From the NCBI GenBank assembly GCA_002269645.1, contig NIVC01003475.1, positions 43,110-96,118 on the forward strand: 53,009 nt of DNA, given 5' to 3'. Shown here in pieces: positions 3,551 to 33,850 of this stretch. Source of the DNA: Macrostomum lignano. Taxonomy: Eukaryota. How positions within the stretch are numbered: position 1 is the first letter of the stretch; each line of letters begins with the position of its first letter. The notes beneath the pieces were generated by a model. It saw nothing but the letters and a program-made list of their open reading frames with translations. It was not told where the DNA came from and searched no databases. The position numbers were made by a program, and so were the translations under genes.

Positions 3551-3816
3551 TCAACCATGCGGCGGCTGCTGCTGACCCAGAGAGCCGATCACCCGGCCGC
3601 CTGGGTTCTGTCGGGGCGGCACGGCGGGCGGTCTAGAGGCCGCCAGCCTAGGCGGACGATCTGGCGGCTTTACCGACACTGAAGCATTCCTCGGAGGCGG
3701 CTGCGGCGGCAGTTGTTGAATCGTGGGACCAGATGGAACCGGGTCCGACACGCTGCGAGAGTGATCTGCGGGTTGCATTGGCAAGCGATAATTCAGATAA
3801 TTCAGAATAGCAGCAA
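3551..3816 (-). CDS. sos: SOS last coding exon, proline-rich tail with stop
   Basis: Acceptor ctacag, phase 1; encodes [22 protein letters not shown]; TGA at 3553-3551. Confidence 0.8.
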
Positions 3817-6800
3817 CTGTAGAGGGAGGATAGGGGCTGTATGGCATGCAATAAAATGCAAAAATTTAATACAAGAAATGAAGATTAACAAATAGGAAAA
3901 ATGTATTAACAAAAACGTGCTGTACTACTAAAAGTAACTAGAGGAAAACGCATTGGTGTGGTGAGATTCTATTAGCCAAAAATTGTTTGAATGGCTAGAT
4001 TAGCAATCATTTTAGATTCCATCATTTGTCATGATTGGCTAGATTAGCAATCCATTCTAGACTCCATTATTTGTCATGATTGGCTAGATTAGCAATCCAT
4101 TCTAGACTCCATTATTTGTCATGATTGGCTAGATTAGCAATCCATTCTAGACTCCATTATTTGTCATGATTGGCTAGATTAGCAATCCATTCTAGACTCC
4201 ATTATTTGTCATGATTGGCTAGATTAGCAATCCATTCTAGACTCCATTATTTGTCATGATTGGCTAGATTAGCAATCCATTCTAGACTCCATTATTTGTC
4301 ATGATTGGCTAGATTAGCAATCCATTCTAGACTCCATTATTTGTCATGATTGGCTAGATTAGCAATCCATTCTAGACTCCATTATTTGTCATGATTGGCT
4401 AGATTAGCAATCCATTCTAGACTCCATTATTTGTCATGATTGGCTAGATTAGCAATCCATTCTAGACTCCATTATTTGTCATGATTGGCTAGATTAGCAA
4501 TCCATTCTAGACTCCATTATTTGTCATGATTGGCTAGATTAGCAATCCATTCTAGACTCCATTATTTGTCATGATTGGCTAGATTAGCAATCCATTCTAG
4601 ACTCCATTATTTGTCATGATTGGCTAGATTAGCAATCCATTCTAGACTCCATTATTTGTCATGATTGGCTAGATTAGCAATCCATTCTAGACTCCATTAT
4701 TTGTCATGATTGGCTAGATTAGCAATCCATTCTAGACTCCATTATTTGTCATGATTGGCTAGATTAGCAATCCATTCTAGACTCCATTATTTGTCATGAT
4801 TGGCTAGATTAGCAATCCATTCTAGACTCCATTATTTGTCATGATTGGCTAGATTAGCAATCCATTCTAGACTCCATTATTTGTCATGATTGGCTAGATT
4901 AGCAATCCATTCTAGACTCCATTATTTGTCATGATTGGCTAGATTAGCAATCCATTCTAGACTCCATTATTTGTCATGATTGGCTAGATTAGCAATCCAT
5001 TCTAGACTCCATTATTTGTCATGATTGGCTAGATTAGCAATCCATTCTAGACTCCATTATTTGTCATGATTGGCTAGATTAGCAATCCATTCTAGACTCC
5101 ATTATTTGTCATGATTGGCTAGATTAGCAATCCATTCTAGACTCCATTATTTGTCATGATTGGCTAGATTAGCAATCCATTCTAGACTCCATTATTTGTC
5201 ATGATTGGCTAGATTAGCAATCCATTCTAGACTCCATTATTTGTCATGATTGGCTAGATTAGCAATCCATTCTAGACTCCATTATTTGTCATGATTGGCT
5301 AGATTAGCAATCCATTCTAGACTCCATTATTTGTCATGATTGGCTAGATTAGCAATCCATTCTAGACTCCATTATTTGTCATGATTGGCTAGATTAGCAA
5401 TCCATTCTAGACTCCATTATTTGTCATGATTGGCTAGATTAGCAATCCATTCTAGACTCCATTATTTGTCATGATTGGCTAGATTAGCAATCCATTCTAG
5501 ACTTTATATTCCTACGTAAACTATAAGATCGACCTAATGATCAATCTATTAAAATAGTTTTCATAAAACTACGAACGAACTACTGCAAACTACTGGACCC
5601 AATCAAGAGCCAAGGCAAGACCAAGATCAACTACTCTCATAACTGTCTCTAATTTATTAGCTCGTAAGCATGAGCTCTATGCTAAGGATAAAGTCACAAG
5701 TGCTTTATCTACACGAGTGCTAAAAAGGTGCTTGAAAGAAAGGCAAATGAAAGTTTAGAAATTAAGCAAACAGCGACAGACACATTACTATAAGCAGCGA
5801 TATCAAGCAGACACTGTGACCGCAATTTGAAAATTTTATCACGATACCGTCTGAGTCAGCTGGGTGCTCCACGCTTTCAATTACTGCAAATTGGAAGCCA
5901 GTCAAATAGCGCTCATTGATCAGTTCACAGAGAAGTGTGGCAGCGAGGGTTACAGACGTTCATTAAGCCTTAACGATGATCATCACAGAGGATCAAGGAG
6001 GTTCATCAAGGAGGTTTATCAAAGAGCTTTAACAAGGAGGTTCAACAAGGAGGTTCATCAAGGAGGTTCACCAAGAAGGTTTATCAAGGAAGTTCATCAG
6101 ATGTTCATCAAGGAGTTTCATAAGGAGGCTCAAGGAGGTTCATCAAGGAGGTTCATCAAGGAGGTTCATCAAGGAGGCTAATCAAGGAGGTTCATCAAAA
6201 ATGTTCAACAAGGAGGTTCATCAAGTAGATCCAGCGCATGCAACTGTGTAGAAAGCAAGGTAAATAATGAATTAAACGGTTTTGCAACTCACTCGGTGAC
6301 GGAGCGATTGAGCCTTCAGGCGACGGTCCCGCCGTTGATGCCGCAGTCGCCGAAGTTGTTGAAGATACTGACGACTGCTGCTGGGGATGCGGTTGGTGCT
6401 GCTGATGATGATGATGATGCAGATGCGGCAGCTGCGGAGGACCGCCGCTGGCTGCTGCAGTGGACAGGGTCAGGAGGCTGCGACCGAGAGCCGCTGTTGC
6501 ACCGGCCGCTTTGACGACGCCGGCACCGCGGCCAGAATTTGAAGACGGCGAGCGAAGGCATTCGGGTGAGAATCTGGCGGTGGGAGAGACACAGTGCAGT
6601 CACATTCATTTTGGGATTAAAATGGAATCTGGCTCTGCTTGTGTAATTAACGGCCTTGAGGGCCAACCCCCACGGCACAGTGAAGTGTATGTACATGCGA
6701 CCTCATTCCAGCCAATCAGTAACAAAACGTACCTCAGCTACTCAACCAAAGCAATAAAAGCACAGCGCAAACCTCCTTTCTCCTCGCCGCTTCAACGCGT

Positions 6801-9800
6801 CCTCGTCGGCGTCCTTGGGCTCCAGGTCGTAGCTCATCCTGTAGAACAGGTCGTCCAGCGCCTGCTGGTTCTGGCTGGTGTCGTCCACCTCGTCCAGTTT
6901 CCGGTCGCCCATTGGGTCGATAGACTGAATTTTTTAAAAAAAACTTAAGCTGAATGACCCCTGAAGCTTTATCTGAATGACCACTGAAGCATTATCTGAA
7001 TCACTCTAAACCATTAGCTAAATGACTCCTGAAGCTTTATTTGAATGACCACTGAAGCTTTATCTGAATGACCCTGAAGCTTTATCTGAATCACTCTAAA
7101 CCATTAGCTAAATGACTCCTGAAGCTTTATTTGAATGACCACTGAAGCTTTATCTGAATGACCCTGAAGCTTTATCTGAATCACTCTAAACCATTAGCTA
7201 AATGACTCCTGAAGCTTTATCTGAATGACCACTGAAGCTTTATCTGAATGACCCTGAAGCTTTATCTGAATGACCACTGAAGCTTTATCTGAATGACCCT
7301 GAAGCTTTATCTGAATCACTCTAAACCATTAGCTAAATGACTCCTGAAGCTTTATCTGAATGACCACTGAAGCTTTATCTGAATGACCCTGAAGCTTTAT
7401 CTGAATCACTCTAAACCATTAGCTAAATGACTCCTGAAGCTTTATCTGAATGACCACTGAAGCTTTATCTGAATGACTCTAAACCATTAGCTAAATGACT
7501 CCTGAAGCTTTATCTAAATGACCACTGAAGCTTTATCTGAATGACTCTGAAGCTTTATCTGAATCACTCTAAACCATTAGCTAAATGACTCCTGAAGCTT
7601 TATCTGAATGACCCTGAAGCTTTATCTGAATCACTCTAAACCATTAGCTAAATGACTCCTGAAGCTTTATCTGAATGACCCTGAAGCTTTATCTGAATCA
7701 CTCTAAACCATTAGCTAAATGACTCCTGAAGCTTTATTTGAATGACCCCTGAAGCTTTATATGAATGACCCTGAAGCTTTAGCTAAATGACTCCTGAAGT
7801 TTGATCTGAATGACCTCTGAAGCTCTATCTGAATGACCCTGAAGCTTTATCTGAATGATACCTGAAGCTTTATCTGAATGAGCCCTAAAGCTTTACTGAA
7901 TGACCCTGAAGCATTAGCTAAATGACTCCTGAAGTTTGATCTGAATGACCCCTGAAGCTTTGTCTGAATGACTCTGAAGCTAATCTGAATGACCCTGAAG
8001 CATTAGCTAAATGACTCCTGAAGCTTTATCTGAATGACCCTGAAGCTTTATCTGAATGACCCTGAAGCTTTATCTGAATGACTCCTGAAGCTTTACCTGC
8101 ACAAACTGCTGAATCTCGGGCACCTCCCGCAGCTGGTAGGCCGTGTCCTTGGCCCTGAACAGTTCGTCGATTCGGTCGGCAACTTGACGATAGCGAAAGA
8201 ACGGCACCAGAACGGTGGAATCGGCCTCGGCATCGCAGAGCAGCTGCAGCGATTCTGGCAACTCTTTCTGCCTGGCTCGATTGATTTCCAGGATGCGGAA
8301 TATGCAGCTCAGGTGGTAGCGCAGGTTGGGCACGCAGGCGCTGGACAGAGAGCGGAGCAGCTCATCGTACTTGGCCAGATTGTTGCTGTTGCTGACCAGC
8401 TCCTGGAATGAGGTGAATTGGATGAGACAGGGTTAGATTAAATTGAGATAGGGGTGAGATTCGATTGAGAAAGGGGTGAGATTCGATTGAGACAGGGGTG
8501 AGATTCGATTGAGACAGAGTTGAGATTCGATTGAGACAGGGGTGGGATTCGATGGAGACAGGGGTGGGATTCGATTGAGACAGGGGTGAGATTCGAGTGA
8601 GACCAGGGTTAGATTAAATTGAGATAGGGGAAAGATTTGATTGAGAAGCGGTTGAGAGTCAACGAGATGTGAGATTTACAGAGATTGGAGAGAGATTCGC
8701 TGAGATTATGGTGAGATTCACCGAGAGTTTGGGTGAGATTCGCTGAGATTATGGTGAGATTCACCGAGAGTTTGGGTGAGATTCGCTGAGATTATGGTGA
8801 GATTCACCGAGACTTTGGATGAGATTCGCTGAGATTGCGGTGAGATTCGCTGAGATTGAGGTGAGATTCGCTGAAACTTAGATGAGATTTTCTGAGATCA
8901 GGGTGAGATTCGCTTGAGAATAGAATGAGATTCGCTGAGACTCGGGTGAGATTCGCTGAGATTATAGTGAGATTCGCTGGGATTATGGTGAGATTCGCTG
9001 AGATTGGGGTGAGATTTGCTGAGATTGAGGTAAGATTTGCTGAGATTGGGTGAGATTCGCTGAGATTGGGGGGATATTTACTTGAGATGAGATTGTATGA
9101 GATAGGGATATGAGCAATCAAACAGATTCTCAGACATAAAAGTGAGATATATTTTCCGCCAACAAAAAGCTCGCTCACCTGCATCTGCTGCAAGAATGAG
9201 TTCTCCCGGCCGTTTTTAATCAGTTTCCAGGTGTGCTGCAGCCTAATGTACTGCACAGACGAGTTCACAAAGACGCTGTCCAAGGCTGCCAGGCCAAGGA
9301 AATTGTTGAGATCGCGAAAGTGCCTCATAATCTGCGAGAGGGTAAAGCATTGCTAATCGGTGGTAGAGAACCACGAAAGATTGCCCCTTAATTCCTTTGA
9401 GAATCGCTGTTCGACCTTTTATAATCTCTTGAAGAATCCCCCACAATCCCCAGCCAATCATGAAGAATCGCCCACAGTCTCCAGCCAATCATGAGGAATC
9501 GCCCACAATACCAGCCAATCATGAGTAATCGCCCACAATCCCCAGCCAATCAGGAGGAATCGCCCACAATCCCCAGCCAATCAGGAGGAATCGTCCACAA
9601 TCCCCAGCCAATCAGGAGGAATCGTCCACAATCCCCAGCCAATCAGGAGGAATCGTCCACAATCCCCAGCTAATCAGGAGGAATCGCCCACAACCCCCAG
9701 CCAATCATGAGGAATCGCCCACAATCCCCAGCCAATCATGAGGAATCGCCCACAATCCCCAGCCAATCATGAGGAATCGCCCACAATCCCCAGCCAATCA

Positions 9801-12618
9801 TGAGGAATCGCCCACAATCCCCAGCCAATCATGAGGAATCGCCCGCAATCCCCAGCGAATCATGAGGAATCGCCCACAATCCCCAGTCAATCATGAGGAA
9901 TCGCCCACAATCCTCAGCCAATCATGAGGAATCGCCCACAATCCCCAGCCAATCATGAGGAATCGCCCGCAATCCCCAGCGAATCCTGGTCTAACCTCGT
10001 AGACCCGCAGCAGAACGTAGCGCCTCTCCTCCAGATTTGGCGTGCTGAGAATGTTACTGCAGCACCACCAGGTGAGCCGATTAGTGTAGCGAATCAGGGC
10101 GTGCACATTGGGCGCTTTGCGCTGTTTCTCGTTAGTCTTCATCCAGTCGCCGGTGACCAGCTCCCAGGGCTGGATGCGCTGGTACAGACTGAACATGTAC
10201 AGAGTGATTTGGCGAGCCAGTTCCAATGGGTGCAGCGACATTAAGTTGAAGTCTTGGGGATCGCTGGTCGTATGCCAGAGAACCTCCGGGCAGTCGGCGG
10301 GCGACGGCGTCTCTTGCGATGGCGACTCGCCTTTGAATCGCCTTTGCGATTAGAAAGGAAGGCAGTTGTATAGTGGTTGTGAGATGAGGCTCTAGAGGGG
10401 AATCCCAACGGCGATTCTATAATGGGGAATCCCAACGGCGATTCTATAGTGGGGAATCCCAACGGCGATTCTATAGTGGGGAATCTCAAACGCGATTCTA
10501 TAGACGGGAATCCCAGTGGCAATTCAATAAGGTGAATCCAAGTAGCGATTCTAAGATAGGGAATCCCAATGGCGATTCTATAATGGGGAATCCCAACGGC
10601 GATTCTATAGTGGGGAATCTCAAACGCGATTCTATAGACGGGAATCCCAGTGGCAATTCAATAAGGTGAATCCAAGTGGCGATTCTAAGATAGGGAATCC
10701 CAACGGCGATTTAATAGTGGGGAATCCCAGTGGCAATTCAATAAAGGGAATCCCAGTCGCGATTCTATGGGTATAAAGGGGAACTCTCGAAAGGTTAAAT
10801 GGGACACACAGACAGACAGACAGAGACAGATAGCTACCTTTCCAAGTTCTTCAGCAGACTGGGGGCTTGAAATTTCTTAATATCGTAGTGCCGCTCAACC
10901 AGCGGGCCGCATAGGAATTCGCGCATTCTGCCCACCAATTTGGGGCAGAGTACAAAGTCGTGAAAGTACTCGCTAACCCAGGTGTTCATCACCTTCAGTA
11001 CGCGCAATCGGACCCGACGACAATAGGCGTTTTCGAATTCGCGTTTCCTCGACTGCGCCTGCGACATTGGCATGTCCGGACTGGTTTGAAAATCTGCGTA
11101 CGAGTAATCCGGGATGCTGAAGCGGGCAATCAGCTTCTCCATCAGGTGCTGAGGAGTGCAAAACGATCGGTAGGTCATGAGAAATACCGGCATGAGGCGG
11201 TTGTCAATGCCGCCGGGCCCCTGGGTCATCTTTTCTACCAGCTTGTTGAGGGTGGCCCGGCGGATGACGTGAGAATCGCTACTGGAGCTATACTCGCTGT
11301 TCTCCTCCAGTTCCAGCACTGCGTCTGAGTCCGGCTGCAGGAATCTGCGGGTGGATGGGTTGTATCTTGCTGTAGTCTGTAGGGATCCGATGCTATGGTG
11401 TAGGGATTCGTTGCTATGGTGTAGGGATTCGTTGCTATGGTGTAGGGATTTGTTGCTATGGTGTAGGGATCCGTTGCTATGGTGTAGGGATCCGTTGCTA
11501 TGGTGTAGGGATTCGTTGCTATGGTGTAGGGATTTGTTGCTATGGTGTAGGGATCCGTTGCTATGGTGCAGGGATCCGTTGCTATGGCGTAGATATTCGT
11601 TGCTTTGGTGTAGGGATCCGATGCTATGGTGTAGGGATTCGTTGCTATGGTGTAGGGATTTGTTGCTATGATGTAGATATCCGTTGCTATGGTGTAGAGA
11701 TTCGTTGCTTTGGTGTAGGGATCCGATGCTATGGTGTAGGGATCCGTTGCTATGGTGTAGGGATTCGTTGCTATGGCGTAGGTATCCGTTGCTATGGTGT
11801 AGGGATCCGTTGTTATGGTGTAGGGATTCGTTGCTATGGCGTAGGGATCTGTTGCTATGATGTAGAGATTCGTTGCTATGGTGTAGGGATCCGTTGCTAT
11901 GATGCAGGGATCCGTTGCTATGGCGTAGATATTCGTTGCTTTGGTGTAGGGATCCGATGCTATGGTGTGGGGATTCGTTGCTATGGTGTAGGGATCCGAT
12001 GCTATGGTGTTAGGGATCCGTTGCTTTGGTGTAGGGATCCGTTGCCATGGTGTAGGGATTCGTTGCTATGGTGTAGGGATTCGTTGCTATGGTGTATGGA
12101 TTTGTTGCTATGGCGTAGGGATTCGTTGCTATGGTGTAGGGATTCGTAGCTAAGGCGTAGGGATCCGTTGCTATGATGTAGAGATCCGTTGCTATGATGT
12201 AGGGATGCGTTGCTATGGTGTAGAGATTCGTTGCTTTGATGTAGGCATCCATTGCTATTGTGTAGGGATTTGTTGCTATGGCGTAGGGATTTGTTGCTAT
12301 GACGAAGGGATTCGTTGCTATGGCGTAGGGATTCCTTGCTATGATGTTAGGAATTCGTCGCTGCGATGTAGATCGTATATGGGATTTTTGTCAGAAGTAA
12401 GGATAAAACCAGCGACAATTTATAAAACAAATTTTACGGCAAACAGCTTATTAAAACTCACTCGTAGCCGTGAGCATTGGTCGGAAAGCAGACTTCCTCT
12501 GGCTTGCTGTTAACACCATGGAATAGGTAGTCTTCGAACATGCTGCGGGCGGTTAAGACAGTGGGGTGGCTATGGCACATATTGGCATCATGGGCTGAGA
12601 AAGTAGGACAGACACATT

Positions 12619-12668
<50 letters not shown>

Positions 12669-12693
12669 CACAGACAGACACACAGACAGACAC

Positions 12694-12744
<51 letters not shown>

Positions 12745-12843
12745 CCCAGGCAGACAGACACAGACAGACAGACACACAGGCAGACAGACACAGACAGACA
12801 AACAGACACACAGGCAGACAGACAGACAGACAAACACACAGGC

Positions 12844-12880
<37 letters not shown>

Positions 12881-13011
12881 CACAGACACACAGACACACA
12901 AACAGACAGACAGACACACAGACAGACAGACACACAGACACACAGACAGACAGACAGACAGACAGACACACACAAACAGACAGACAGACACACAGACAGA
13001 CAGACAGACAC

Positions 13012-13042
<31 letters not shown>

Positions 13043-16000
13043 CACACAAACAGACAGACAGACACACAGACAGACAGACAGCTCAGCACCAAGACGCGCT
13101 CACTGGTAGCACTGCAGGTAGACCAGGATGAGCATCCAGTCGTCCTTCTCCGCCGCACTTTTAGTCCCGAACACGGCCCGCTGCCGAGTCGGCGCAGCCA
13201 GGCCAGCCGAATCGCCGGACTCCGCAGGCGCCAGGTACTCGATAGCGAAGGTGTGCAGTTCTGTGCGCAATGCAAGTAGTATGTAGTAGTATGCAATGCG
13301 CATAAGTAATTTAAATATAGAAGAAATTTGGGAAAATTTTCCAGAAGTGAGGTCCGGAGTTCGCATCTTTGTAGAAAATATCATGAATCCTTTTTCCGAA
13401 TGGCCAGCGTTTCTTAGATCTCCCTAGAAATCCGCCAGAGAGATTCTGTTATCAGACAGCCAGACAGTCTGGGATGTTATTAAATTTATTATTACGAGAA
13501 TATTAACAAAACAATCCGTACACACAGAAGCATATGATAAAAACTTATTTTCAGCCAGTTTAGAAACAGTTGGCTGGGTTTATGCAAATAAGAGCCCAGC
13601 GAAGCCGCATGCAGCCTCAGTGCCCAGTCAGACGCGCACAAACAAAATTATTTAAAGATCAAGGGCATCAGATAACACTTGAGGGCCGGCGACCGACTGT
13701 GTCTGTTGGCTTAACTGTCCTCTGCACTGCACTTTACAGAGCGTAGAAATTTGCTTTGTTTCGAGGAGCAGCACAAAATACTCAATCTAGAGTCCAATAG
13801 TCCCAATCTAGAGTCCAATAGTCCCAATCTAGAGTCCCATAGTCCCAATCTAGAGTCCAATAGTCCCAATCTAGAGTCCAATAGTCCCAATCTAGAGTCC
13901 AATAGTCCCAATCTAGAGTCCAATAGTCCCAATCTAGAGTCCCATAGTCCCAATCTAGAGTCCAATAGTCCCAATCTAGAGTCCAATAGTCCCAATCTAG
14001 AGTCCCATAGTCCCAATCTAGAGTCCAATAGTCCCAATCTAGAGTCCAATAGTCCCAATCTAGAGTCCAATAGTCCCAATCTAGAGTCCAATAGTCCCAA
14101 TCTAGAGTCCCATAGTCCAGCCTAAAATCTCAATCTAGAGTCCCATAGTCCCAGTCTAGAGTCTCAATCTAGAGTCCCATAGTCCCAGTCTAGAGACTCA
14201 TAGTCCCAAAGTCCCAATCTAGTCCCATGGTTCCAAAGTCCCAATCCAGAGTCTCATATTCCCAGTCTAGAATCCCAATATAGAGTCCCATAGTCCAGTC
14301 TAGAATCTCAATCTAGAGTCCCATAGTCCTATTCTTGAGTCCCATAGTCTCAATCTATAGACCTACAGATCTACAGACCCATGAGGTCTACAGACCCATG
14401 AGATCTACACACCCATGAGATCTACACACCCATGAGATCTACAGACTCGCAAGATCTATAAACTCAAAATCTATAGACAGTCTATTTACTTGACAATATC
14501 TATTACAGACCCAAGACCAGCAAGTCTCGGACCGCCCACGTACCATCATCGGTCCCAGCGGCGGCTCCATCAGCAGCCGCGGCAGCATCAGCGGCAGCGG
14601 CCAGATCCAGCACGCAGAAGCGGTACTGGGCAAGGTGTACAACCCGCTTCAATTTGAATTCCTCGCCGCTGCCGCGCAGAGCCAGCGTCTTGCTGCACGC
14701 CTTCAGCACGAACAGCCGATTATTAAATAAGCAGACGCGCCTCTCGCGAAACCGGCCGCCCCGCTGTTCGAGATGCCACAGGCTGGCGTCGCGATAGAAC
14801 ACGCAGCACTTCGGTCTGGCGTCAATCTCGGCTGCGGATTTCGTTGCCTGGCGCAGCTGGTCCAGCTTCTTGGCGCAGTGCCGGTCAGGATGGTCCGCAT
14901 CCGGCGAGCGAACCGAGTTGTGAAAGAACAGCCTGGAGGCCAGCGGACTCAGCGGTCGGCACCAGCCGTCTGTAGCAGCAGATTCGGTGCCGCCGCCAAC
15001 AGCCGTCAGAGATCGCTCGAGTTCAAGCAGCACCGTGTCAATCTTGTGCCTAGTGGACACCAGTATGGATCGGCACTGCTTGATAGCGTCTCGATCCTTG
15101 GCTGACGAAGCGTCCTCGCTGCTGCCGAGGCTGCCAATCATTGTCGAAGACGGAGTCGCATCGACAGGATCGGACGAGTCGGAGATTTGTTGATCGCGCA
15201 GCTGCTCAAAGTGAGCAAGTATCCGATCGTAGTAGAGGAAATGCCCGATGGGCACCAATAGCAGGTTTGGCAGCAGGTAGCGGCAGGCAAGCAGCAGGCA
15301 GTTTCTGGTCTCGCCAGATGATGCAGACAACGGCGGCGGCGGCGGCTGTGTCGGTTCGTCACCGACGTCGGGCCGGTCGGAAGTCGCATCGCTAGGCGAA
15401 GAAGCTGTACCGCCAGATGCGGCGGACACGCTGACTAGATCTAGAGACGAGAACAGATAGTGCTGAGGCAGCTGCTGATGTTGTTGCCTACGACGGTGAT
15501 TCTGCGATTGCAAGGCAGTGGCCGCTAGGCGACTCAGGCAGCGCTGCTCCACGGTGCGGCCGAGGGATTCGTATTTCTCCTGCACTGCTCGATTGCTGAG
15601 TAGGCTCAGCAGGCGCTCCGTACAGCGTGGGTTCAAGATGTCCTGGAGGGATGGGACCGGTCATGGTCAGGGGCGATTTTCAAGACTGTCAGGGGGGGCG
15701 ATTCTTAAGACTGTCAGGGGGCGATTCTTCAGACTGTCAGGGGGCGATTCTTTAGACTGTCAGGGGGGCGATTCTTAAGACTGTCAGGGGGAGATTCTTA
15801 AGACTGTCAGGGGCGATTTTCAAGACTGTCAGGGGGCGATTTTCAAGACTGTCAGGGGGCGATTCTTCAGACTGTCAGGGGGAGATTCTTAAGACTGTCA
15901 GGGGCGATTTTCAAGACTGTCAGGGGGCGATTTTCAAGACTGTCAGGGGGCGATTCTTAAGACTGTCAGGGGGCGATTCTTAAGACTGTCAGGGGGGCGA

Positions 16001-18856
16001 TTCTTCAGACTGTCAGGGGGCGATTCCGAATGGTAGGATAAGGGGCGATTCCGAATGGCAGGCTAAGGGGCGATTCCCGATTCCCAAACAATAACAGTAG
16101 ATTTTTCATAATATTATAAAGGAAATAGACATAGACAGTTATGCAACAAGCATTACTCACCTGAGCATACTTGGCAAAGCTATCAAAGTTGCCCTCCTCA
16201 GCCAGCTCATAGAAGCAGTGCCCAATGGGCGGCTTGTCGGTGACATTCCGACTGTCATCCAGAGCCACGAACAGCAAGCCTGAGCACTCAGCTACCTGGC
16301 TAATAGCGCTGAACACCGTATCAATATCTGGCGAACTCGAATTCAACTCAACTAGCGGCTGTTTAAACAGCTGACAGACAATCTGTAATTGCTTAGAAAA
16401 TGTCTCTTCAAGGTACAGCAATTCGTTGACACCCTGGCGACATTCTTTCGGCAGTGACCATTCGTACTCCGCGTCGATTAATTGCTGATGTTGCTGCTGG
16501 TGCTGTTGCTGAGCAGTTGGCAATGAAGCAGAGAAGAACGTGTCCACAACAATCTGTGACAGAGTAAGTCGGAGTCTGTGTTTATTTTGTTTCTAGCTGC
16601 TCATATGACATACTACTGACTAAAGAAGCTTATTATACTACTGACTCTATAGAAGCTCATATGACCTAATAAGACCACCGACTAGATACATGCTTATATG
16701 ACATACTACTGACTATAGAAGTTTATATGACCTAAGACCACTGACTAGATACATGCTTATATGACATACTACTGACTATAGAAGCTTATATGACATACTA
16801 CTGACTTTATAGAAGCCTATATGACCTACTCGTAATAAGACCACTGACTAGATACATGCTTATATGACATACTACTGACTATAGAAGTTTATATGAGCTA
16901 AGACCGCTGACTAGATACATGCTTATATGACATACTACTGACTCTATAGAAGCTCATATGACCTACTACTGACTCGATAGATGCTTATATGACCTTATAT
17001 GGTTTAACATTGCAGTTCAAAAAAGTACATAATGACCCGAATAGCAATAAGAATCACCGCATACCTTAATATCGACTTTCTTCAACTCATAAATCTTAAT
17101 CTTCTTCATGTAGGTGATTGACAGGCGCATTATCTCGCAGACCACGTGCTCCATGACCAAAGTGGTGAACAGGCAGACAGACTCGTCGGCAGTCCGGGGC
17201 AGCACCCGGTGTACACATTCGAATAGGGCGATGGCCGCTTTGCGTTTCTTTCGGACAGCCAGCTCGCGCATGTCCCTGACTGAGTCCGAGTGCAGGTTGC
17301 AGCTGGCGAACAGCTGCAAATAATTGCGCAATAGCAGAGCCGTTTATGTACAAGTCGAATTTACAGCCGATATGTATCGAAAGTTTGTTTGCAAAAGGGT
17401 ACTGCGGTTAATAAAAATTTACGATTGTATAGTTTAGGCTGAGACATTGGGATGTCAGATGCGACAATGGGATGTCAGATGAGACATTGGGATGTCAGAT
17501 GAGACATTGGGATGTCAGATGCGACAATGGAATGTCAGATGAGACATTGGGATGTCAGATGAGACATTCCGGGATGTCAGATAATGTCAGATGAGACATT
17601 GGGATGTCAGATGCGACAATGGGATGTCAGATGAGACATTGGGATGTCAGATGAGACATTGGGATGTCAGATGCGACAATGGGATGTCAGATGAGACATT
17701 GGGATGTCAGATGAGACATTCCGGGATGTCAGATAATGTCAGATGAGACATTGGGATGTCAGATGAGAGATTGGAATGTCACATGAGACATTGGGATGTC
17801 AGCCTTGAGATGTCATATTGCCGATATGTATAGAAAATATACAAAACAGATTGCGAATCACACCCTACCTGAACTAAACGATCTTCAGCTTCCATCGCAG
17901 TGGCTGGCAAAGGCGATTCGCAAAGCACGGCAAACCGCTCAATAAGGTAATTTTCCAGGTAGTCCAGGGCATCCTTAGCTATGGAGTAAACTGAGCAGGA
18001 GCCCGAATCGTTGCCTGGGACCTGTCAGACGGGTGCGGTTGCGAAATCAAGCATTATTAATATATGCAAGATTACGAGCTAGTTTACTGAAAAGATGTCA
18101 GACAAGAGCATGGGATGTCAGACACTGAGACACTCGGATGTCAGCCGAGACATTGAGATATCAGCTGGGACACTGAGATGTCAGCTGGGACACTAAGATG
18201 CCAGCTGGGACACAGAGATGTCAGCTGGGACACTGAGATGTCAGCTGGGACACAGAGATGCCAGCTGGGACACTGAGATGTCAGCTGGGACACTGAGATG
18301 CCAGCTGGGACACTGAGATGTCAGCTGGGACACTTGGATGCCAGCTGAGACACTTAGATGTCAGCTGAGACACTGAGATGCCAGCTGGGACACTTAGATG
18401 TCAGCTGAGACACTGAGATGCCAGCTGGGACACTGAGATGTCAGTTGAAACACTGAGATATCAGCTGGGACAGTGAGATGTCAGCTGAGACACTTGAATG
18501 TCATTTGAGACACTTGGATGTCAGTTGAGACACTTGTATGTCAGCTGGGACACTGGGATGTCAGCTGGTACACTAGATGCCAGCTGGGACACTGAGATGC
18601 CAGCTGGGACACTAAGATGCCAGCTGGGACACTGAGATGCCAGCTGGGACACTGAGATGCCAGCTGGGACACTGAGATGCCAGCTGGGACACTAAGATGC
18701 CAGCCGTACCTTTTCCTTAAACAGGCGACACAGCGCGGCCTTCAGACGTCCCCGGAGCTGTTTGCGAATCACATCGGTCGCGGCGGCGGAGGCGACAGCC
18801 AGCGACAGCTGCGACTGGTACCGGCCGCCGCCGCCGCCGCCTCCGCCGATGCTCAT
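3551..18856 (-). CDS. sos: Son of sevenless-like Ras guanine nucleotide exchange factor (14 coding exons; histone-fold, DH, PH, REM, Cdc25, proline-rich tail)
   Basis: Exons (minus, 5' to 3'): 18856-18710, 18021-17869, 17313-17065, 16553-16161, 15642-14544, 13260-13104, 12542-12462, 11344-10838, 10341-9996, 9331-9179, 8402-8097, 6924-6773, 6573-6293, 3816-3551. All are joined by GT-AG with matching phases; total 4290 nt, open to TGA. Motifs match SOS1 recalled from memory: [58 protein letters not shown], PxxPxR. The start codon is uncertain. Confidence 0.9.
3991..5503. repeat. 45-bp minisatellite, about 33 near-identical copies, SOS last intron
   Basis: Unit TGGCTAGATTAGCAATCCATTCTAGACTCCATTATTTGTCATGAT. 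Confidence 0.98.
5990..6225. repeat. Degenerate 13-bp repeat
   Basis: AAGGAGGTTCATC units. Confidence 0.9.
6293..6573 (-). CDS. sos: SOS exon, low-complexity His/Gln/Ser region after Cdc25
   Basis: Acceptor ccgccag, donor gtgagt; phase 2 to 1; reads [10 protein letters not shown]...HHHHHQQHQ. Confidence 0.75.
6773..6924 (-). CDS. sos: SOS exon, Cdc25 C-terminus
   Basis: SIDPMG...[14 protein letters not shown], similar to SOS1 LNPMG...DYLFNKSLEIEPR; ttcag acceptor, gtttgc donor. Confidence 0.85.
6950..8096. repeat. 21-22 bp minisatellite filling a SOS intron
   Basis: CTGAAGCTTTATCTGAATGACC units with interspersed CTCTAAACCATTAGCTAAATGACT. Confidence 0.96.
8097..8402 (-). CDS. sos: SOS exon, Cdc25 helical hairpin
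   Basis: [31 protein letters not shown]...RQVADRIDE...[12 protein letters not shown]; ccag acceptor, gtaaag donor. Confidence 0.88.
8420..9070. repeat. GAGATTCG-core degenerate minisatellite
   Basis: GGTGAGATTCGATTGAGACAG grading into GGTGAGATTCGCTGAGATT. Confidence 0.92.
9179..9331 (-). CDS. sos: SOS exon, Cdc25 core
   Basis: [13 protein letters not shown]...IRLQHTW; tcgcag acceptor, gtgagc donor; phase 0 to 0. Confidence 0.9.
9432..9985. repeat. 31-bp minisatellite
   Basis: GAGGAATCGCCCACAATCCCCAGCCAATCAT units. Confidence 0.95.
9996..10341 (-). CDS. sos: SOS exon, REM-Cdc25 linker and Cdc25 start
   Basis: [30 protein letters not shown]...[14 protein letters not shown]; caaag acceptor, gttaga donor. 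Confidence 0.9.
10395..10770. repeat. 27-bp minisatellite
   Basis: GGGGAATCCCAACGGCGATTCTATAGT units. Confidence 0.92.
10838..11344 (-). CDS. sos: SOS exon, REM domain
   Basis: [64 protein letters not shown]. Confidence 0.92.
11380..12350. repeat. 21-bp minisatellite
   Basis: GTAGGGATCCGTTGCTATGGT units. Confidence 0.96.
12462..12542 (-). CDS. sos: SOS small exon, PH-REM helical linker
   Basis: ccgcag acceptor, gtgagt donor; phase 2 to 2 fits both neighbours; MFEDYLFH...TNAHGY. Confidence 0.75.
12619..13081. repeat. (CAGA)n compound microsatellite
   Basis: Fills most of SOS intron 12543-13103. Confidence 0.97.
13104..13260 (-). CDS. sos: SOS exon, PH domain C-terminus
   Basis: HTFAIEY...[21 protein letters not shown], matching SOS1 [21 protein letters not shown]. 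Confidence 0.88.
13785..14455. repeat. 21-bp minisatellite plus a short GATCTACAC repeat
   Basis: CTAGAGTCCAATAGTCCCAAT units, degenerating after about 14120. Confidence 0.95.
14544..15642 (-). CDS. sos: SOS exon, DH C-terminal half and PH N-terminal part with low-complexity insertions
   Basis: [18 protein letters not shown]; [16 protein letters not shown]; FKLKRVVHL; ctccag acceptor, gtacgt donor. Confidence 0.85.
15668..16080. repeat. About 23-bp minisatellite
   Basis: GGGGGCGATTCTTAAGACTGTCA units. Confidence 0.95.
16161..16553 (-). CDS. sos: SOS exon, DH N-terminal half
   Basis: [53 protein letters not shown]; cacag acceptor, gtgagt donor. Confidence 0.88.
16605..16995. repeat. About 29-bp degenerate minisatellite
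   Basis: GACATACTACTGACTATAGAAGCTTATAT-like units. Confidence 0.88.
17065..17313 (-). CDS. sos: SOS exon, second histone-fold
   Basis: [39 protein letters not shown], similar to SOS1 [31 protein letters not shown]. Confidence 0.82.
17440..17812. repeat. 20-bp minisatellite
   Basis: GGGATGTCAGATGAGACATT units. Confidence 0.93.
17869..18021 (-). CDS. sos: SOS exon, first histone-fold
   Basis: [30 protein letters not shown]; gacag acceptor, gtaggg donor. Confidence 0.8.
18105..18704. repeat. 20-bp minisatellite
   Basis: CAGCTGGGACACTGAGATGY units. Confidence 0.94.
18710..18856 (-). CDS. sos: SOS first confidently coding segment (frame stays open upstream to 19065)
   Basis: ATG MSIGGGG...[15 protein letters not shown] then donor gtacgg; phase 0 matches the next exon. 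Confidence 0.65.
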
Positions 18857-19056: not shown

Positions 19057-20196
19057 ACACACCCACTGAGATAAGGATGTTGAGCTGCTAGCACACACAC
19101 ACCCACTGAGATAAGGATGTTGAGCTGCTAGCACACACCCACTGAGATAAGGATTTTGAGCTGCTAGCACACACCCACTGAGATAAGGATGTTGAGCTGC
19201 TAGCACACACACACCCACTGAGATAAGGATGTTGAGCTGCTAGCACACACCCACTGAGATAAGGATTTTGAGCTGCTAGCACACACCCACTGAGATAAGG
19301 ATGTTGAGCTGCTAGCACACACCCACTGAGATAAGGATTTTGAGCTGCTAGCACACACACACCCACTGAGATAAGGATTTTGAGCTGCTAGCACACACAC
19401 CCACTGAGATAAGGATTTTGAGCTGCTAGCACACACACACCCACTGAGATAAGGATTTTGAGCTGCTAGCACACACACACCCACTGAGATAAGGATGTTG
19501 AGCTGCTAGCACACACCCACTGAGATAAGGATTTTGAGCTGCTAGCACACACACACCCACTGAGATAAGGATGTTGAGCTGCTAGCACACACACCCACTG
19601 AGATAAGGATTTTGAGCTGCTAGCACACACACACCCACTGAGATAAGGATGTTGAGCTGCTAGCACACACCCACTGAGATAAGGATGTTGAGCTGCTAGC
19701 ACACACACCCACTGAGATAAGGATGTTGAGCTGCTAGCACACACCCACTGAGATAAGGATTTTGAGCTGCTAGCACACACACACCCACTGAGATAAGGAT
19801 TTTGAGCTGCTAGCACACACACCCACTGAGATAAGGATGTTGAGCTGCTAGCACACACCCACTGAGATAAGGATTTTGAGCTGCTAGCACACACACACCC
19901 ACTGAGATAAGGATGTTGAGCTGCTAGCACACACACCCACTGAGATAAGGATTTTGAGCTGCTAGCACACACACACCCACTGAGATAAGGATGTTGAGCT
20001 GCTAGCACACACCCACTGAGATAAGGATGTTGAGCTGCTAGCACACACACCCACTGAAATAAGGATTTTGAGCTGCTAGCACACACACCCACTGAGATAA
20101 GGATTTTGAGCTGCTAGCACACACACACCCACTGAGATAAGGATGTTGAGCTGCTAGCACACACCCACTGAGATAAGGATTTTGAGCCGCTAGCAC
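19057..20196. repeat. 33-39 bp minisatellite with variable (AC)n spacer, about 30 copies
   Basis: CCCACTGAGATAAGGAT(G/T)TTGAGCTGCTAGC(AC)n. Confidence 0.96.
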
Positions 20197-20759
20197 AAAT
20201 TAACATACGTAATTAATTAATTAATGCAACAAATTAAATGTGCAGAAGTTGCATGTAAGGCTGTGACAGATTTCGCAAAGCAATCATAAAAAATTCATAC
20301 AAGTTGTGATAAAAAAGTTTCTATTATAGTTAGCTTTGAATGAATTTCTAAATAATTCCAGGGGCGTCAACAATCCCAGCGCCAAACTCGACCAATTTTA
20401 AACGAACTAAAAGATATTGCACTGCACTTTTATTGCAAAACTGTCTGGCTTGGGAGGAGGGGGTAAGCGAAAGAGCTTTATATATATATATCCGCGACCA
20501 TATTTCGGGTCAGGACCGTTTCCGCTTTCCAATAAAAAGGACCCCAATTTCTCTCTGTCTGTCTGTCGCCCAGATTATCCACTAGCTTCTGCACCACCAA
20601 TTGCCTGCTATAGTTCGCCTGACATAACGTCAAGACTTATGCTATAAACATATTTCGCTATAGAATGCAGAAAAATACTAATGTTTTTAATTTACAGTTA
20701 AACCCAGAGAGCAAATGTAAATTCATCTTTAGCACAAGGTGATGATTTGAACTCAATAT

Positions 20760-23570: not shown

Positions 23571-24964
23571 AGAGATGTCTTGTCTGCCTTCTGTAAGATT
23601 TTTGTCTACATACTTTAGGATTTGTCTGCATTCTGTGTATAGTACATATGCAACTGCTAGCTGGCCAAGCCAATCTGGCTAGCATAATTTGTGGAAGACC
23701 AAGGGTAAATCACAAAATTGAGGACAAAGAAGCAAAAAAGACAAGAAAACAAAGAAACAAAAAGGGAAAAGGCAAGATGATAAAAAATGAAAAGTGATAT
23801 AGAGAAAAAATGGAAAAAACAAAAACAAGAAGCAAAAGGAGAATAAGACAAGGCAAGTTGCAAAAGGAACAAACTATGTTATACAAGGGATTTCAAATTT
23901 TCTCTCAAAACTGTTTTTTTTATTCAAATCTAAGTCTTGTAGCCAGTATAATTTTAAAGGTTAAATATATACATGATTTGATAAGATTCTAATTCCAAGC
24001 AACAATATCTAGAATTTTTTGAAGACTTTTTAAAGGAGTTTTCTAGGATTACAGGAATAATTCAAATAGATTTCAAGACAAAACTTCATCAATAATTTTT
24101 GTAGCAGTTTTAGAATTTCCTATATGACTCAATATTATTAAAACTGTAAGGCCTACTTAGGCTATTATAAACAATTAATTAATATTATTGTATATAGCAT
24201 AAGTTTATTCATATCTTGAGATTATAACTAAGCACAATTATAGTATAATAAGACAAAGGCTCTACCTATATAGAAGCATAATAATAAATATAGTTAGAGG
24301 CCTATGCTTACTATTAGAGTTCCAACAAATACTTGACTTGATTCTTGAAAGTTGAGTACTCAACGCTATTTTTCTTATACTCAAAGTTGAGAAATTTTTG
24401 TCCAATAGCTGAGTAGTCAAAAATTATTTTAAATAAACTTCCATTTTTATCCTATTTGTACTTTTACCATGTGTCACCAACCAGAACTCAATTGCAAAAA
24501 AATATACCACTTGCATTTTTAGTTTTACTGTTTATTCTCTTTATTGTAGTTATTGTGTAAACTATGCCAGATGCCCCCCTCTCCTGCACAGTGGCACAAC
24601 CAACCTCCTCCCTCTAGGCAAATGCCTAAAAATCAAAGGTGGATCAAGTGAATTTTTGCCAAAAACAGAGCCACCCCCTTTGTCTTCCTTGGGTCTCTAC
24701 CAGTGTTGCCACTATAGCAACCAAAGAAATTATTGCAGGATAAGAAAAAAATCGCAGGAACAAATTTCTTATTTGTCATAGAGAAAAAGGCGCCAGTAGA
24801 CGAAAACAACTTTCTTTTTTTAGCTTTCTATTTCTAATTCCATCTTCTATTTGACTAAAAAACTGCTACAATTTGCAATAACTGCATGCAACTCTCATTT
24901 ACGCCGAATCAGTGAAGTAGTCATACAACACAAGCATTTTCTTAAGGGAAGACAGGCATACATA

Positions 24965-25572
24965 CACTCAGCAACAGTCGAAACTGCCACCCTACCAAGA
25001 GGCGACTTCTCTCTCACCTCAACTGCAAGTGACGTAACTTGCACCACGGCGTGGCTAAAGCTGGGTATGAGTGAATTCCAGGGTGAGAGTAGAAAAGGGA
25101 CTGGGGTTGGGGTTGGGGATGAAACAGTACATGTGACAATGGTCAGGCATATGACAGACGCTGAACGATGGCGCGCTGTTGGCATGCTAGAAGCTGGTGC
25201 ATCCATCAGCGCAGTTGCTCACCGATTTGGCCGATCACGTTCAACAATTCGAGCGCTGTTAACTAAGTCCCAAGATACTGGTAGTGTTCAGCATGCAGCC
25301 ATAGGCAGCCAGCGCCATAATCTCTGCAGCTCAATAGCCAGGGCAAATTGACGTCTACTGCGGATTGTCAGGCGAACTCTAACTGCGCCAGCCACCCTGC
25401 TCTGTCTAATGTGGGGTGAAAGAAGCAGATGGGGCATCCCCTGATTGCCCTCTCCTGCATTCACTCTCACCCAGCTTTAGCCACACTGTGGCGCAAGTTA
25501 CGTCACTTGCAGTTGAGGTGAGAGAGAAGTCACCTCTCTCGGTAGGGTGGCAGTTTTGACTGTTGCTGAGTG
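24965..25572 (+). mobile_element. Internally deleted Tc1/mariner element with transposase N-terminal HTH remnant
   Basis: About 115-bp terminal inverted repeats starting CACTCAGCAACAGTC; TA target duplication at 24963-64 and 25573-74; ATG at 25139 gives MVRHMTDAERWRAVGMLEAGASISAVAHRFGRSRSTIRALL..TGSV. Confidence 0.9.
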
Positions 25573-30468: not shown

Positions 30469-31491
30469 CAATTTTCTCTCCGATCGCAATTCTCCAAGTT
30501 ACGCAACTGGCATCCATCGCGGGGAACGGCATTGATCAATTGCACATGCATAGTTTTGAATATTACGCGCTCGTAGTTGAATAATTGAATAATACCGTTC
30601 CCCGTGCGGGATGCCAGTAAGCGTAACGTACAGGATGCGATGGGAGCTCAGAAATGGCACATTAGATCAGGGTGTAGTTATATCATTTTTTGTGTTCGTT
30701 AGGTTGAACACCGAGAATGAACTACATGTAGTAGTTCTGCGGTCACGCACGCGCTCTTTGCGCTTTTATTGCTCCAAGGAGCCGCTGTGAAATGTACGTG
30801 TGTAATACATGAAATTGTATGTGTATATAGTTGGTCCCATTCAGTCAGAGCCTAAGGTGAGCCACGTCGTCACCCTTTCGTCAGCTCGTGTATCTATGCT
30901 TGACCTTGCACACCAATTTGTGCCTTTGATCGTATAATCTATATAGGAGCCATTGATACATGTACACCCATTTTTATGACTGTACTTGACGGTGTGAACA
31001 AGTCCTATACCCAAAATGAGTTCTCTGTCTGCCCTTCCCTTTCTTGTGATTGGATGGCGTATTTAGAAATTATATTCTGTCTGCAGCTCCCCCATGCCCT
31101 CTCCAACTCTCCGATTGGATAATCTACAACAAAAAACTCAGTGAGCAATGCACTACGAGCGTCATATTCAAGAGTACATTCTCATGAGCCTGCATCTGTC
31201 TTGATTTATAAAGATTGCGAGCTAAAAAACACAAACTGCGCGTAGCTATACGAGCGCAACAAGCAGGTTACCAACTCCCTTATAAATCCGTCCGACTATA
31301 TCTTCTAGCTCGTATTATTCGTACATGTGAGCCATTTTTACTTGTTTTTTAATTTTGTTTCTATACTACTATTTTATAGCTAGTACACCCGCGTATACTC
31401 ACATTAGGTTAACATCAAAATTAAACCATATATAAACCAACCTTGGAATTAAAGCAAATTCAAAATCACAAATGGTCCAATCTATAACATC

Positions 31492-32000
31492 TAGTCAGCA
31501 ACAGTCAAAATTTCCACCCTTCCACAAAAGCAGCGGTAAAAAACAGCTTCAGCTGCAGCGCACTCTGCGCTGGCCTTCCCGGTCCCCAGACATGAATCCC
31601 ATCGAGCATGCCTGGGACTTACTAAAACGCAGCATTCGAAAAGAGAATCCACCACAGAATGTTGCGGAGCTGCGTCATGCCATTGAAAACGCTTGGCAGC
31701 AGCTTCTCCAGGACTTTCTGCGCCGCCTCATCCTGAGGATGCCCCACAGAGTTGCCGCACTTCTGCCTGCGAGGGGATCCCACACGCGTTATTATAAGCA
31801 TCGCGATTATAATTGCATATTGCATAAAAATGTTATGATTTTGTGCGACTGACGTTTATTATTGATTCAATCAACTTTCCCTTCCTCGCAGCGGCTTAGT
31901 TGCGTAACTTGAGGGCTGAATTGGGAGTGAGGAGTTGTCGCAATAGGTGAGAAAATTTTCATCTTGCTTGGAGGGTGGAGCTTTTGACTGTTGCTGAGTA
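31492..32000 (+). mobile_element. Internally deleted Tc1-like element with transposase C-terminal remnant
   Basis: WPSRSPDMNPIEHAW..GSHTRY is the Tc1 C-terminal signature; ends TAGTCAGCAACAGTCAAAA and TTTTGACTGTTGCTGAGTA followed by TA. Confidence 0.88.
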
Positions 32001-33159: not shown

Positions 33160-33850
33160 ATGTCCAACTGCAGCAGCGGAACTTTTCTCTGTCAGAATGC
33201 CAGCTCCCTCATCCTGCCGCTGCTGGACGAGTCCACCTGGCGAAATGAGGTGCGCGCAGCACTCTACCTAGTTGGCCTATTCTGGTCATTCATGGGCGTC
33301 TCTATCGTTGCCGATGTCTTCATGACCTCGATCGAACGAATCACCAGTGCTACAAGGAAAATGACCTTTTTTAACTCGGACACCGGCGTGGACGAGCAGG
33401 TGGACGTTAAGATCTGGAATGACACCGTGGCCAACCTATCCCTGATGGCGCTGGGCTCAAGTGCACCGGAGATCCTGCTCTCCATCATTGAGATCATCGG
33501 CAACGGCTTCAAGGCGGGCGAACTCGGGCCAGGAACCATCGTCGGTAGCGCAGCTTTCAACCTGTTGATCATCACCGCCGTGTGCATCTGCTCTGTCGAC
33601 GATGAAGGCAAGCGGATCAAACAGTTCATGGTGTTCTGTGTGACGGCCACCTTCTCCGAGTTTGCCTACATCTGGCTGGTCATTATTCTTGTGTGCAGCT
33701 CACCGGACTTCATCGACCTCTGGGAGGGCGTGGTCACTTTTCTGCTATTCTTCATCCTGGTGGTGGCAGCCTACATCATGGACAAGGGCTTCTGCTTCAA
33801 GAAAGCGGAAACTGAGGCTGATAAGGAGGCCAATAAAGGCCTGATTGTCC
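33160..33850 (+). CDS. ncx: NCX exon 1: TM1-5 with alpha-1 repeat
   Basis: IWNDTVANLSLMALGSSAPEILLS; donor gtgagt at 33851; upstream acceptor ttcctag at about 33111 implies an earlier non-coding exon or trans-splicing. Confidence 0.95.

Follow-up and report, generated by a model that had tools for sequence, protein, structure and literature searches.

Can a Son of sevenless (SOS) protein still activate Ras when the phenylalanine that anchors Ras switch II in its catalytic hairpin has been replaced? The question is raised by an SOS-like gene of the flatworm Macrostomum lignano, which occupies 3551..18856 on the minus strand of a 53,009-nucleotide stretch of contig NIVC01003475.1 (assembly GCA_002269645.1, positions 43,110 to 96,118), referred to here as the window. 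An initial annotation of this DNA had described an SOS with a degenerate catalytic helical hairpin and intact allosteric residues, and had proposed a pseudo-guanine nucleotide exchange factor (pseudo-GEF) or a re-specified GEF; both proposals are possible after the analysis reported here and neither is favored. The gene is one of at least two SOS co-orthologues in M. lignano, and it is intact and under selection. Since an older duplicate gene keeps the same change, sequence comparison indicates that it is a maintained lineage-specific SOS variant rather than a product of decay.

The structural background comes from human SOS1, whose numbering is used throughout. The pocket for Ras Tyr64 is formed by I825, L872 and F929, while K939 contacts Ras Tyr32 and H911 contacts Ras Tyr40; the F929A mutation leads to a more than 50-fold loss of Ras binding, and R826A, T935A and E1002A have little effect (PMC8623491). 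F929A is a GEF-crippling SOS1 allele and W729E blocks the allosteric site (PMC3762125). The earlier statement that a substitution at F929 cripples SOS1 agrees with this literature on F929A (PMC3762125, PMC8623491). SOS1 in addition has adaptor roles that are independent of catalysis (PMC3762125).

Departure from the SOS consensus at the helical hairpin

The hairpin of the Cdc25 domain, consisting of helices H and I, is encoded by exon 11 of the gene (8097..8402, minus strand; 306 nt with a CAG acceptor and a GTAAAG donor). When the spliced REM-Cdc25 region was searched against all PDB chains with phmmer, human SOS1 was matched with E=2e-59, and the helix H equivalent (8280..8336) aligned to human C926-N944 without gaps (CVPFFGIYLTNILKTEEGN). 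The minus strand from 8336 to 8280 reads TGC GTG CCC AAC CTG CGC TAC CAC CTG AGC TGC ATA TTC CGC ATC CTG GAA ATC AAT. The codon reading, the SOS alignment and the alignment of 186 Cdc25 domains described below agree on AAC, or Asn, at the F929 position (8325..8327) and on CGC, or Arg, at the G931 position (8319..8321). The gapless alignment and the Asn codon at 8327-8325 had been proposed by the initial annotation, as had F929N, G931R, T935S, L938F, G943I and the retention of E942; each was found correct residue by residue in the phmmer alignment. Since the change from F to N takes two nucleotide changes (TTY to AAC) and several adjoining codons differ as well, a single-base error does not account for F929N.

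The base of helix H reads NLRYH, as compared to FFGIY in human SOS1, and the changes along the helix are F929N, G931R, Y933H, E941L and G943I. Ahead of it, PP924/925 is replaced by SA and the D910/H911 positions are both Asn (8379..8384; phmmer and MAFFT), H911 being the residue that stacks on Ras Y40 in SOS1 (PMC8623491). In the Tyr64 pocket I825 is kept, the L872 equivalent is Ala (9289-9287, in exon 10) and F929 is Asn. On the face of helix H that inserts into the nucleotide site, T935 is replaced by S, L938 by F and K939 by R, with E942 and N944 unchanged. Helix I starts at 8184..8210, where phmmer and the MAFFT alignment place LVPFFRYRQ opposite human LINFSKRRK, as had been noted earlier in the shorter form of INFSKRR becoming VPFFRYR; most of this helix departs from invariant SOS residues. 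The tip between the two helices (8211..8282) is 13 residues longer than in human SOS1 by phmmer and a six-sequence flatworm alignment. The SOS1 residues kept in the MAFFT alignment are I825, R826, W809, K814, L687, R688, E942 and N944. An alternative, canonical hairpin exon was sought within the 53-kb window and none was found.

To place these changes in the wider family, we searched a 1.84-billion-protein library exhaustively with phmmer and aligned 186 Cdc25 domains taken from the 166 proteins closest to the query. Of these domains, 169 have F or Y at position 929 and none has N; at position 931, 156 of 184 have G. A second alignment was made of 28 canonical SOS proteins from vertebrates, insects, a mite, a tardigrade, a leech, a tunicate, a horsehair worm and others. 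F929, G931 and G943 are invariant in all 28, and Y933 and E941 are at least 93% conserved, such that the canonical signature C-[VI]-P-F-[FL]-G-x-Y-L-T...E-E-G-N is absent from the window protein. Some of the canonical proteins have S at 935 and some have F at 938, and 939 is H, K or Q in them, which makes R conservative. T935S and L938F are thus real changes, as the initial annotation had it, but their description as degeneration was overstated. Conservation among the 28 canonical proteins reaches at least 90% in 92 columns, of which the window protein keeps 59 and changes 33. Since 22 of the 33 conserved columns within residues 905-980 are changed as compared to 11 of the 59 elsewhere (Fisher p=9e-6), the departure from the SOS consensus is real and is focused on the helical hairpin.

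The same 33 hairpin-region columns were examined in other lineages. The number changed is 16-18 in trematodes, 8-11 in nematodes and 20 in one further SOS-like clade. These lineages also concentrate change there, so that residues 905-980 are, across divergent lineages in general, the part of SOS that evolves fast. In nematodes, genetics has established SOS-1 as an activator of Ras. Among the divergent SOS lineages compared, the loss of F929 and G931 is unique to Macrostomum.

Several other groups of sequences in the search bear on hairpin variation. The SOS-like clade with 20 changed columns consists of P0085, P0086, P0097 and P0111 from Logan assemblies, and it keeps a P-Y-L-G signature (CIPYLGSYQTKLLHANEGNKT). 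A third SOS-like clade (P0053, P0057 and P0088) reads CVPFIGIHLT. Many of the non-SOS matches have two Cdc25-like domains (P0020, P0022, P0023, P0040, P0041, P0052, P0073, P0106, P0108, P0155 and others), the second of which usually lacks the aromatic-x-Gly signature (for example ALPSLPSYLDEL and CIPPLDYYLAEV). By their sequences, these second domains look like candidate built-in pseudo-GEF domains.

Conservation of the derived hairpin in Macrostomum

Two close relatives were recovered by the exhaustive search, both of them UniRef entries of M. lignano. P0018 (A0A1I8IA52) is 98.7% identical, with 14 substitutions in 1042 aligned residues (99% identity over the 392 matched residues of the search query), and its hairpin motif is identical to that of the window protein. 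Since P0018 has the same motif despite 14 other differences, it provides independent support for the AAC codon. M. lignano is a neopolyploid whose three subgenomes differ by about 1.4-2.4% (PMC10733133), and the 98.7% identity of P0018 fits a homeologous or allelic copy of the window gene.

P0019 (A0A1I8IGW9) is only 71% identical over REM-Cdc25 and carries the same NLR motif. This level of identity is far older than the recent genome duplication and indicates that P0019 is an older paralogue. The initial annotation had named an NLR motif in functional orthologues as evidence against its proposal, and half of this was found in that the paralogue P0019 shares the motif. Between the window protein and P0019, helix H is the best-conserved segment with 17 of 19 residues (89%) identical. 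Identity is 78% in the Cdc25 core, 69% in REM, 64-79% in DH, 57% in PH, 54% in the histone folds and 25-45% in linkers and inserts. As helix H tops the identity between paralogues that are only 71% identical, the hairpin is derived and under constraint, the opposite of relaxed decay. The earlier description of the hairpin as degenerate is contradicted by this conservation, by the conservative nature of the inserting residues and by a predicted local distance difference test (pLDDT) score of about 95 in the structural model.

The public models of the two relatives are faulty. The P0018 model fuses antisense open reading frames (ORFs) of the neighboring Na+/Ca2+ exchanger gene and other junk to the SOS exons and skips part of DH. 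It is named after a Mlh1_C domain and P0019 is named RING-type, with both models ending just past helix H. The variant is easy to miss because the public UniProt models are chimeric or truncated and are not named SOS. A published description of the Macrostomum hairpin variant was not found in the literature, nor was a paper pairing Macrostomum with SOS1.

SOS in other flatworms

All matches beyond P0018 and P0019 are at most 40% identical to the window protein. In a neighbor-joining tree of 131 Cdc25 domains, the Macrostomum pair falls inside the SOS clade beside four trematode proteins, from Heterobilharzia, Schistosoma mekongi, Dicrocoelium and one more. The grouping of Macrostomum with trematode SOS was recovered in 331 of 500 bootstrap replicates with all columns and in 427 of 500 without columns 905-980. 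This support is moderate because a distance method was applied to long branches.

The trematode proteins (S. mekongi KAK4472908, H. americana CAH8484680 and D. dendriticum CAH8574870) have in common with Macrostomum a long hairpin tip, a non-canonical helix H, T829N and the loss of W729; their identity to the window protein is only about 30%. Unlike in Macrostomum, the trematode hairpin (LPFIAVGDKTQLIHLELKH) keeps F929 and the LINFWKC motif and has A rather than R at G931. E941L is common to trematodes and Macrostomum in the six-sequence flatworm alignment only; this sharing is alignment-dependent, since the trematode sequences are offset by one residue in the larger MAFFT alignment, which has E at 941 in them. 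In S. mansoni, Smp_199010 is annotated as SOS, and the literature on this species lists a single SOS gene whose product was detected as a phosphoprotein (PMC5459504, PMC7089424). Nothing was found in the literature on planarian SOS hairpins.

Of the best 150 representatives 30 were looked up, and none of these was a flatworm SOS with a canonical hairpin; the survey did not cover the full M. lignano proteome. The initial annotation spoke of "this paralog", which implies that a canonical copy exists alongside it. The data give no support for this, in that the second M. lignano copy has the NLR motif, the nearest trematode proteins are non-canonical and the entries looked up included no canonical flatworm SOS.

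Gene structure and domain architecture

The SOS-like gene was modeled as 14 coding exons with 1429 codons and a stop. All introns are GT-AG, the phases are consistent and there are zero internal stops; exon 7 and the donor of exon 5 were set by comparison with the public M. lignano models P0018 and P0019. All exons are on the minus strand. Exon 1 (18710..18856) supplies the ATG and the N-terminus. Exons 2 (17869..18021) and 3 (17065..17313) encode histone folds 1 and 2, such that window residues 65-186 match SOS1 42-166 (phmmer to 1q9c, E=2.5e-9).

The first half of DH is in exon 4 (16161..16553). Exon 5 (14544..15642) contains the second half, an insert of about 85 amino acids and the start of the PH region, which ends in exon 6 (13104..13260). 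The DH domain was recognized by Pfam PF00621 (RhoGEF) at 32.3 bits against a cut-off of 27.6, the match covering only profile positions 2-104 of 180. It was also matched to 1dbh (E=6e-17), and in phmmer its second half aligned past the insert. Together, the histone folds and DH matched SOS1 with E=2e-26. The DH-splitting insert is of low complexity and rich in Q, S and P, and it is followed by a second disordered stretch (amino acids 344-428 and 463-546; 15642-14544). Nowhere do the two paralogues differ more than in these two stretches (25-39% conserved). The PH region gave no Pfam PH match and only a short, weak phmmer stretch of 23 residues to SOS1 523-545.

Exon 7 (12462..12542; 81 nt) encodes the linker from PH to REM and is present in P0018 and P0019. 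It is followed by exon 8 (10838..11344) with the REM or RasGEF_N domain (PF00618, E=3.9e-23). The Cdc25 domain (PF00617, E=1.9e-35) is distributed over exons 9 (9996..10341, with the I825/R826 equivalents at 10094-10089), 10 (9179..9331), 11 and 12 (6773..6924), as placed by phmmer with Pfam or MAFFT. The Pfam RasGEF match ends at profile position 167 of 181, compared to 1-181 in canonical SOS. Exon 13 (6293..6573) encodes a low-complexity C-terminal region and exon 14 (3551..3816) a proline-rich tail with the stop. The tail has three PxxPxR motifs by sequence match, PQPPPR, PDRPPR and PAVPPR (3706-3689, 3664-3647 and 3628-3611; amino acids 1379-1410), which are candidates for Grb2 binding.

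Human SOS1 and SOS2 and Drosophila Son of sevenless have the same domain order, with two histone folds, DH, the PH region, REM, Cdc25 and a PxxPxR tail. The window gene is an SOS-family member by architecture, fold and phylogeny, and the earlier identification of the family from the histone folds, DH and PxxPxR motifs was sound. It differs from canonical SOS in that identity over REM-Cdc25 is only about 31-35%, a large low-complexity insert divides DH and the hairpin tip is extended, in addition to the substitutions at F929, G931, Y933, E941, G943, PP924/925, L872 and H911.

Minisatellites fill nearly every intron of the gene, each intron having its own, with periods of 20-56 bp and up to 34 copies; the SOS exons are all open nonetheless. 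Examples are found at 3988-5503, 6950-8099, 9430-9985, 11378-12362 and 19057-20197, and the copies in the 45-bp array at 3988-5503 are 99% identical. Tracts of (CTGT)n occur in addition at 1-1026 and 12620-13081, and the repeat-rich part of the window as a whole spans 1-21500.

Predicted structure of the REM-Cdc25 region

The REM-Cdc25 region was modeled by AlphaFold2 with a 60-sequence alignment. The mean pLDDT is 90.2 and the predicted template modeling score 0.89. Query residues 362-381, which correspond to helix H, and 403-421 are predicted as helices with a pLDDT of about 88-95, and the tip between them is less confident, at about 68-70, and contains a short extra helix. Each of the best 50 Foldseek matches in the PDB is a REM-Cdc25 structure of SOS1 or SOS2, with template modeling scores of 0.75-0.85. 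In the model the helical hairpin keeps its structure, and the predicted fold resembles that of open SOS1. Because AlphaFold was trained on SOS1 structures, this result speaks for compatibility with the fold, not for function.

The NSP family (BCAR3 and SH2D3C/SHEP1) is a known case of a Cdc25 fold off the catalytic consensus with a documented lack of exchange activity (PMC10532290). In this family the Cdc25-like domain is closed and binds Cas proteins; it is combined with an SH2 domain, and REM, DH-PH and histone folds are absent. The NSP-type closed domain was found in none of the best 50 Foldseek matches and among none of the phmmer PDB matches. An NSP-type identity for the window protein is ruled out by its SOS-type architecture and by the lack of NSP matches in sequence or fold.

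The allosteric site

The initial annotation had reported that the allosteric residues are intact. This holds for the Leu-Arg pair equivalent to L687/R688, which phmmer and MAFFT locate at 11002..11007 in the motif VRLRVL. The L687 position varies in canonical SOS, where it is F in 16, L in 7 and I in 3. It does not hold for W729, which was said to be kept in VLWH. The tryptophan of VLWH (10272..10283) aligns to human W763 (TVEWH), and W729 of the human AMKKW motif lies opposite DIKKFQ, where it corresponds to F by HMMER and to Q by MAFFT; KKF (10870..10878) is opposite human K727-K728-W729. Likewise, N691, which is invariant in the 28 canonical SOS, is replaced by K, R694 by N and H695 by T. 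Judging from these residues, the allosteric regulation of the window SOS is probably altered or weakened.

Other features of the window

An Na+/Ca2+ exchanger gene of the NCX/Calx type adjoins the SOS gene on the opposite strand (33160-43867, plus strand). It is multi-exon and has Na_Ca_ex domains at both ends, a Calx-beta domain at 36334-37026 and a further Calx-beta-like ORF at 39150-39425. On the minus strand, the ORF at 48257-48706 has two C2H2 zinc fingers that weakly match a REST-like finger and, after them, runs of poly-Q and poly-A; it is probably one exon of a zinc-finger gene. There are remnants of Tc1/mariner-type transposases on the plus strand, a helix-turn-helix/Tc3-like N-terminal part at 24851-25351 and a DDE_3 C-terminal part at 31472-31852, which are about 6 kb apart and do not form one intact ORF. 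Scans of the window with Rfam and for tRNA found no RNA genes.

Discussion

What, then, does the derived hairpin do? We propose, tentatively and with somewhat less than even confidence, that the window gene encodes a functional exchange factor whose switch-II anchor has been rebuilt, possibly by co-evolution, and which still binds a Ras-family GTPase. In such a protein the PxxPxR tail would still recruit Grb2, and the hairpin would still engage a Ras-family GTPase, binding it and exchanging its nucleotide. The anchor for switch II would be lineage-specific and probably co-evolved; Tyr at 932, one helical turn past 929, is a speculative substitute for the missing aromatic residue. Three points argue that the hairpin surface may still bind a GTPase: helix H is under constraint, its inserting face has changed only conservatively, and flatworms apparently lack a canonical SOS. 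Engineered SOS1 F929A is comparable to the window protein in that both are without the aromatic side chain that buries Ras Tyr64 (PMC8623491, PMC3762125). However, F929A is one laboratory substitution in a canonical protein, whereas the Macrostomum change occurs in nature alongside about 20 further differences in the hairpin, and the paralogue conserves it. For these reasons compensation is possible in the window SOS.

Several observations weigh against an active exchange factor or loosen the argument for it. By the rules of human SOS1, F929N in combination with L872A and H911N would be strongly disabling, and the switch-II anchor should be weak because the pocket is I/A/N and H911 is N. Asn at 929 is without precedent among the 186 Cdc25 domains examined, and hence without an active precedent. 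At the allosteric site W729, N691, R694 and H695 are all changed. The conservation of helix H reflects constraint and is not evidence of catalysis. The clade that unites Macrostomum with the trematodes joins long branches, so long-branch attraction is possible. Finally, the impression that canonical SOS is missing from flatworms comes from a survey of 30 entries among the best 150 representatives.

A different explanation is that exchange has been lost and that the protein is a pseudo-GEF or adaptor in which DH-PH, Grb2 binding and possibly Ras binding are retained. Its function would be that of a scaffold, in the manner of the catalysis-independent role of SOS1 for p38, or would be exerted through DH, and receptor tyrosine kinases would reach Ras through another GEF. 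We consider this possible but rather unlikely. It accounts well for F929N, L872A and H911N, which affect residues whose alanine mutants lose Ras binding (PMC8623491), and GEF-dead F929A SOS1 still rescues adaptor function (PMC3762125). G931, PP924/925, E941, G943 and most of helix I are off the invariant SOS residues, the Pfam RasGEF match stops short of the profile end and Cdc25-fold precedents exist in NSP/SH2D3C (PMC10532290). Yet helix H is the most conserved segment between the paralogues, and the residues that insert into the nucleotide site (a hydrophobic one at 938, a basic one at 939, E942 and N944) are kept although they are not obviously needed for binding alone. The predicted fold is like open SOS1, with no NSP-type structure in the best 50 matches. 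In addition, since no canonical SOS was among the flatworm entries retrieved, the NLR-type genes may be the sole SOS genes.

It is less likely still that the protein is an active GEF whose preference has shifted from Ras to Rap, Ral, R-Ras, Rit or a flatworm-specific GTPase. Such a shift would be in keeping with changes that spare the catalytic face and center on the hairpin base and the anchor for switch II, and with two paralogues that maintain the same derived surface. On the other hand, Rap, Ral, R-Ras and Rit have Tyr or Phe where Ras has Tyr64, and with an aromatic residue at that position the polar pocket fits no known substrate obviously. The SOS architecture and the Grb2 motifs are also kept, which argues for the usual position in the pathway.

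An error in sequencing or assembly at this codon, or a decaying pseudogene copy, is very improbable: the genome is neopolyploid and about 36% of scaffolds were chimeric in one assembly (PMC10733133), but this reading is largely refuted by the two-base change amid several differing codons, by the recurrence of the motif in P0018 and in P0019, by 14 open exons with correct splice phases amid introns full of minisatellites and by conservation that follows domain boundaries.

SOS1 is routinely made catalytically dead by mutation of F929, and the design of Ras inhibitors uses helix H as a template. The Macrostomum lineage has replaced F929, G931, L872 and H911 and yet would keep this helix under purifying selection. 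If the protein is still active, it could show how the Ras switch-II anchor can be rebuilt through co-evolution of a core signaling interface. It is conceivable, though we would not expect it, that Macrostomum SOS and perhaps flatworm SOS more widely have naturally lost canonical Ras exchange and are Grb2-coupled pseudo-GEFs similar to F929A, which selection maintains as scaffolds, for Ras binding or for a function that depends on DH. Receptors in these animals would then be coupled to Ras through a different exchange factor, and the protein could be the first natural SOS pseudo-GEF, separating adaptor functions from catalysis in vivo. M. lignano supports RNA interference and transgenesis, and this experimental tractability makes both possibilities testable. 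For now, the hairpin is a lineage-specific sequence variant in a fast-evolving phylum, and as such a natural experiment at a textbook residue.

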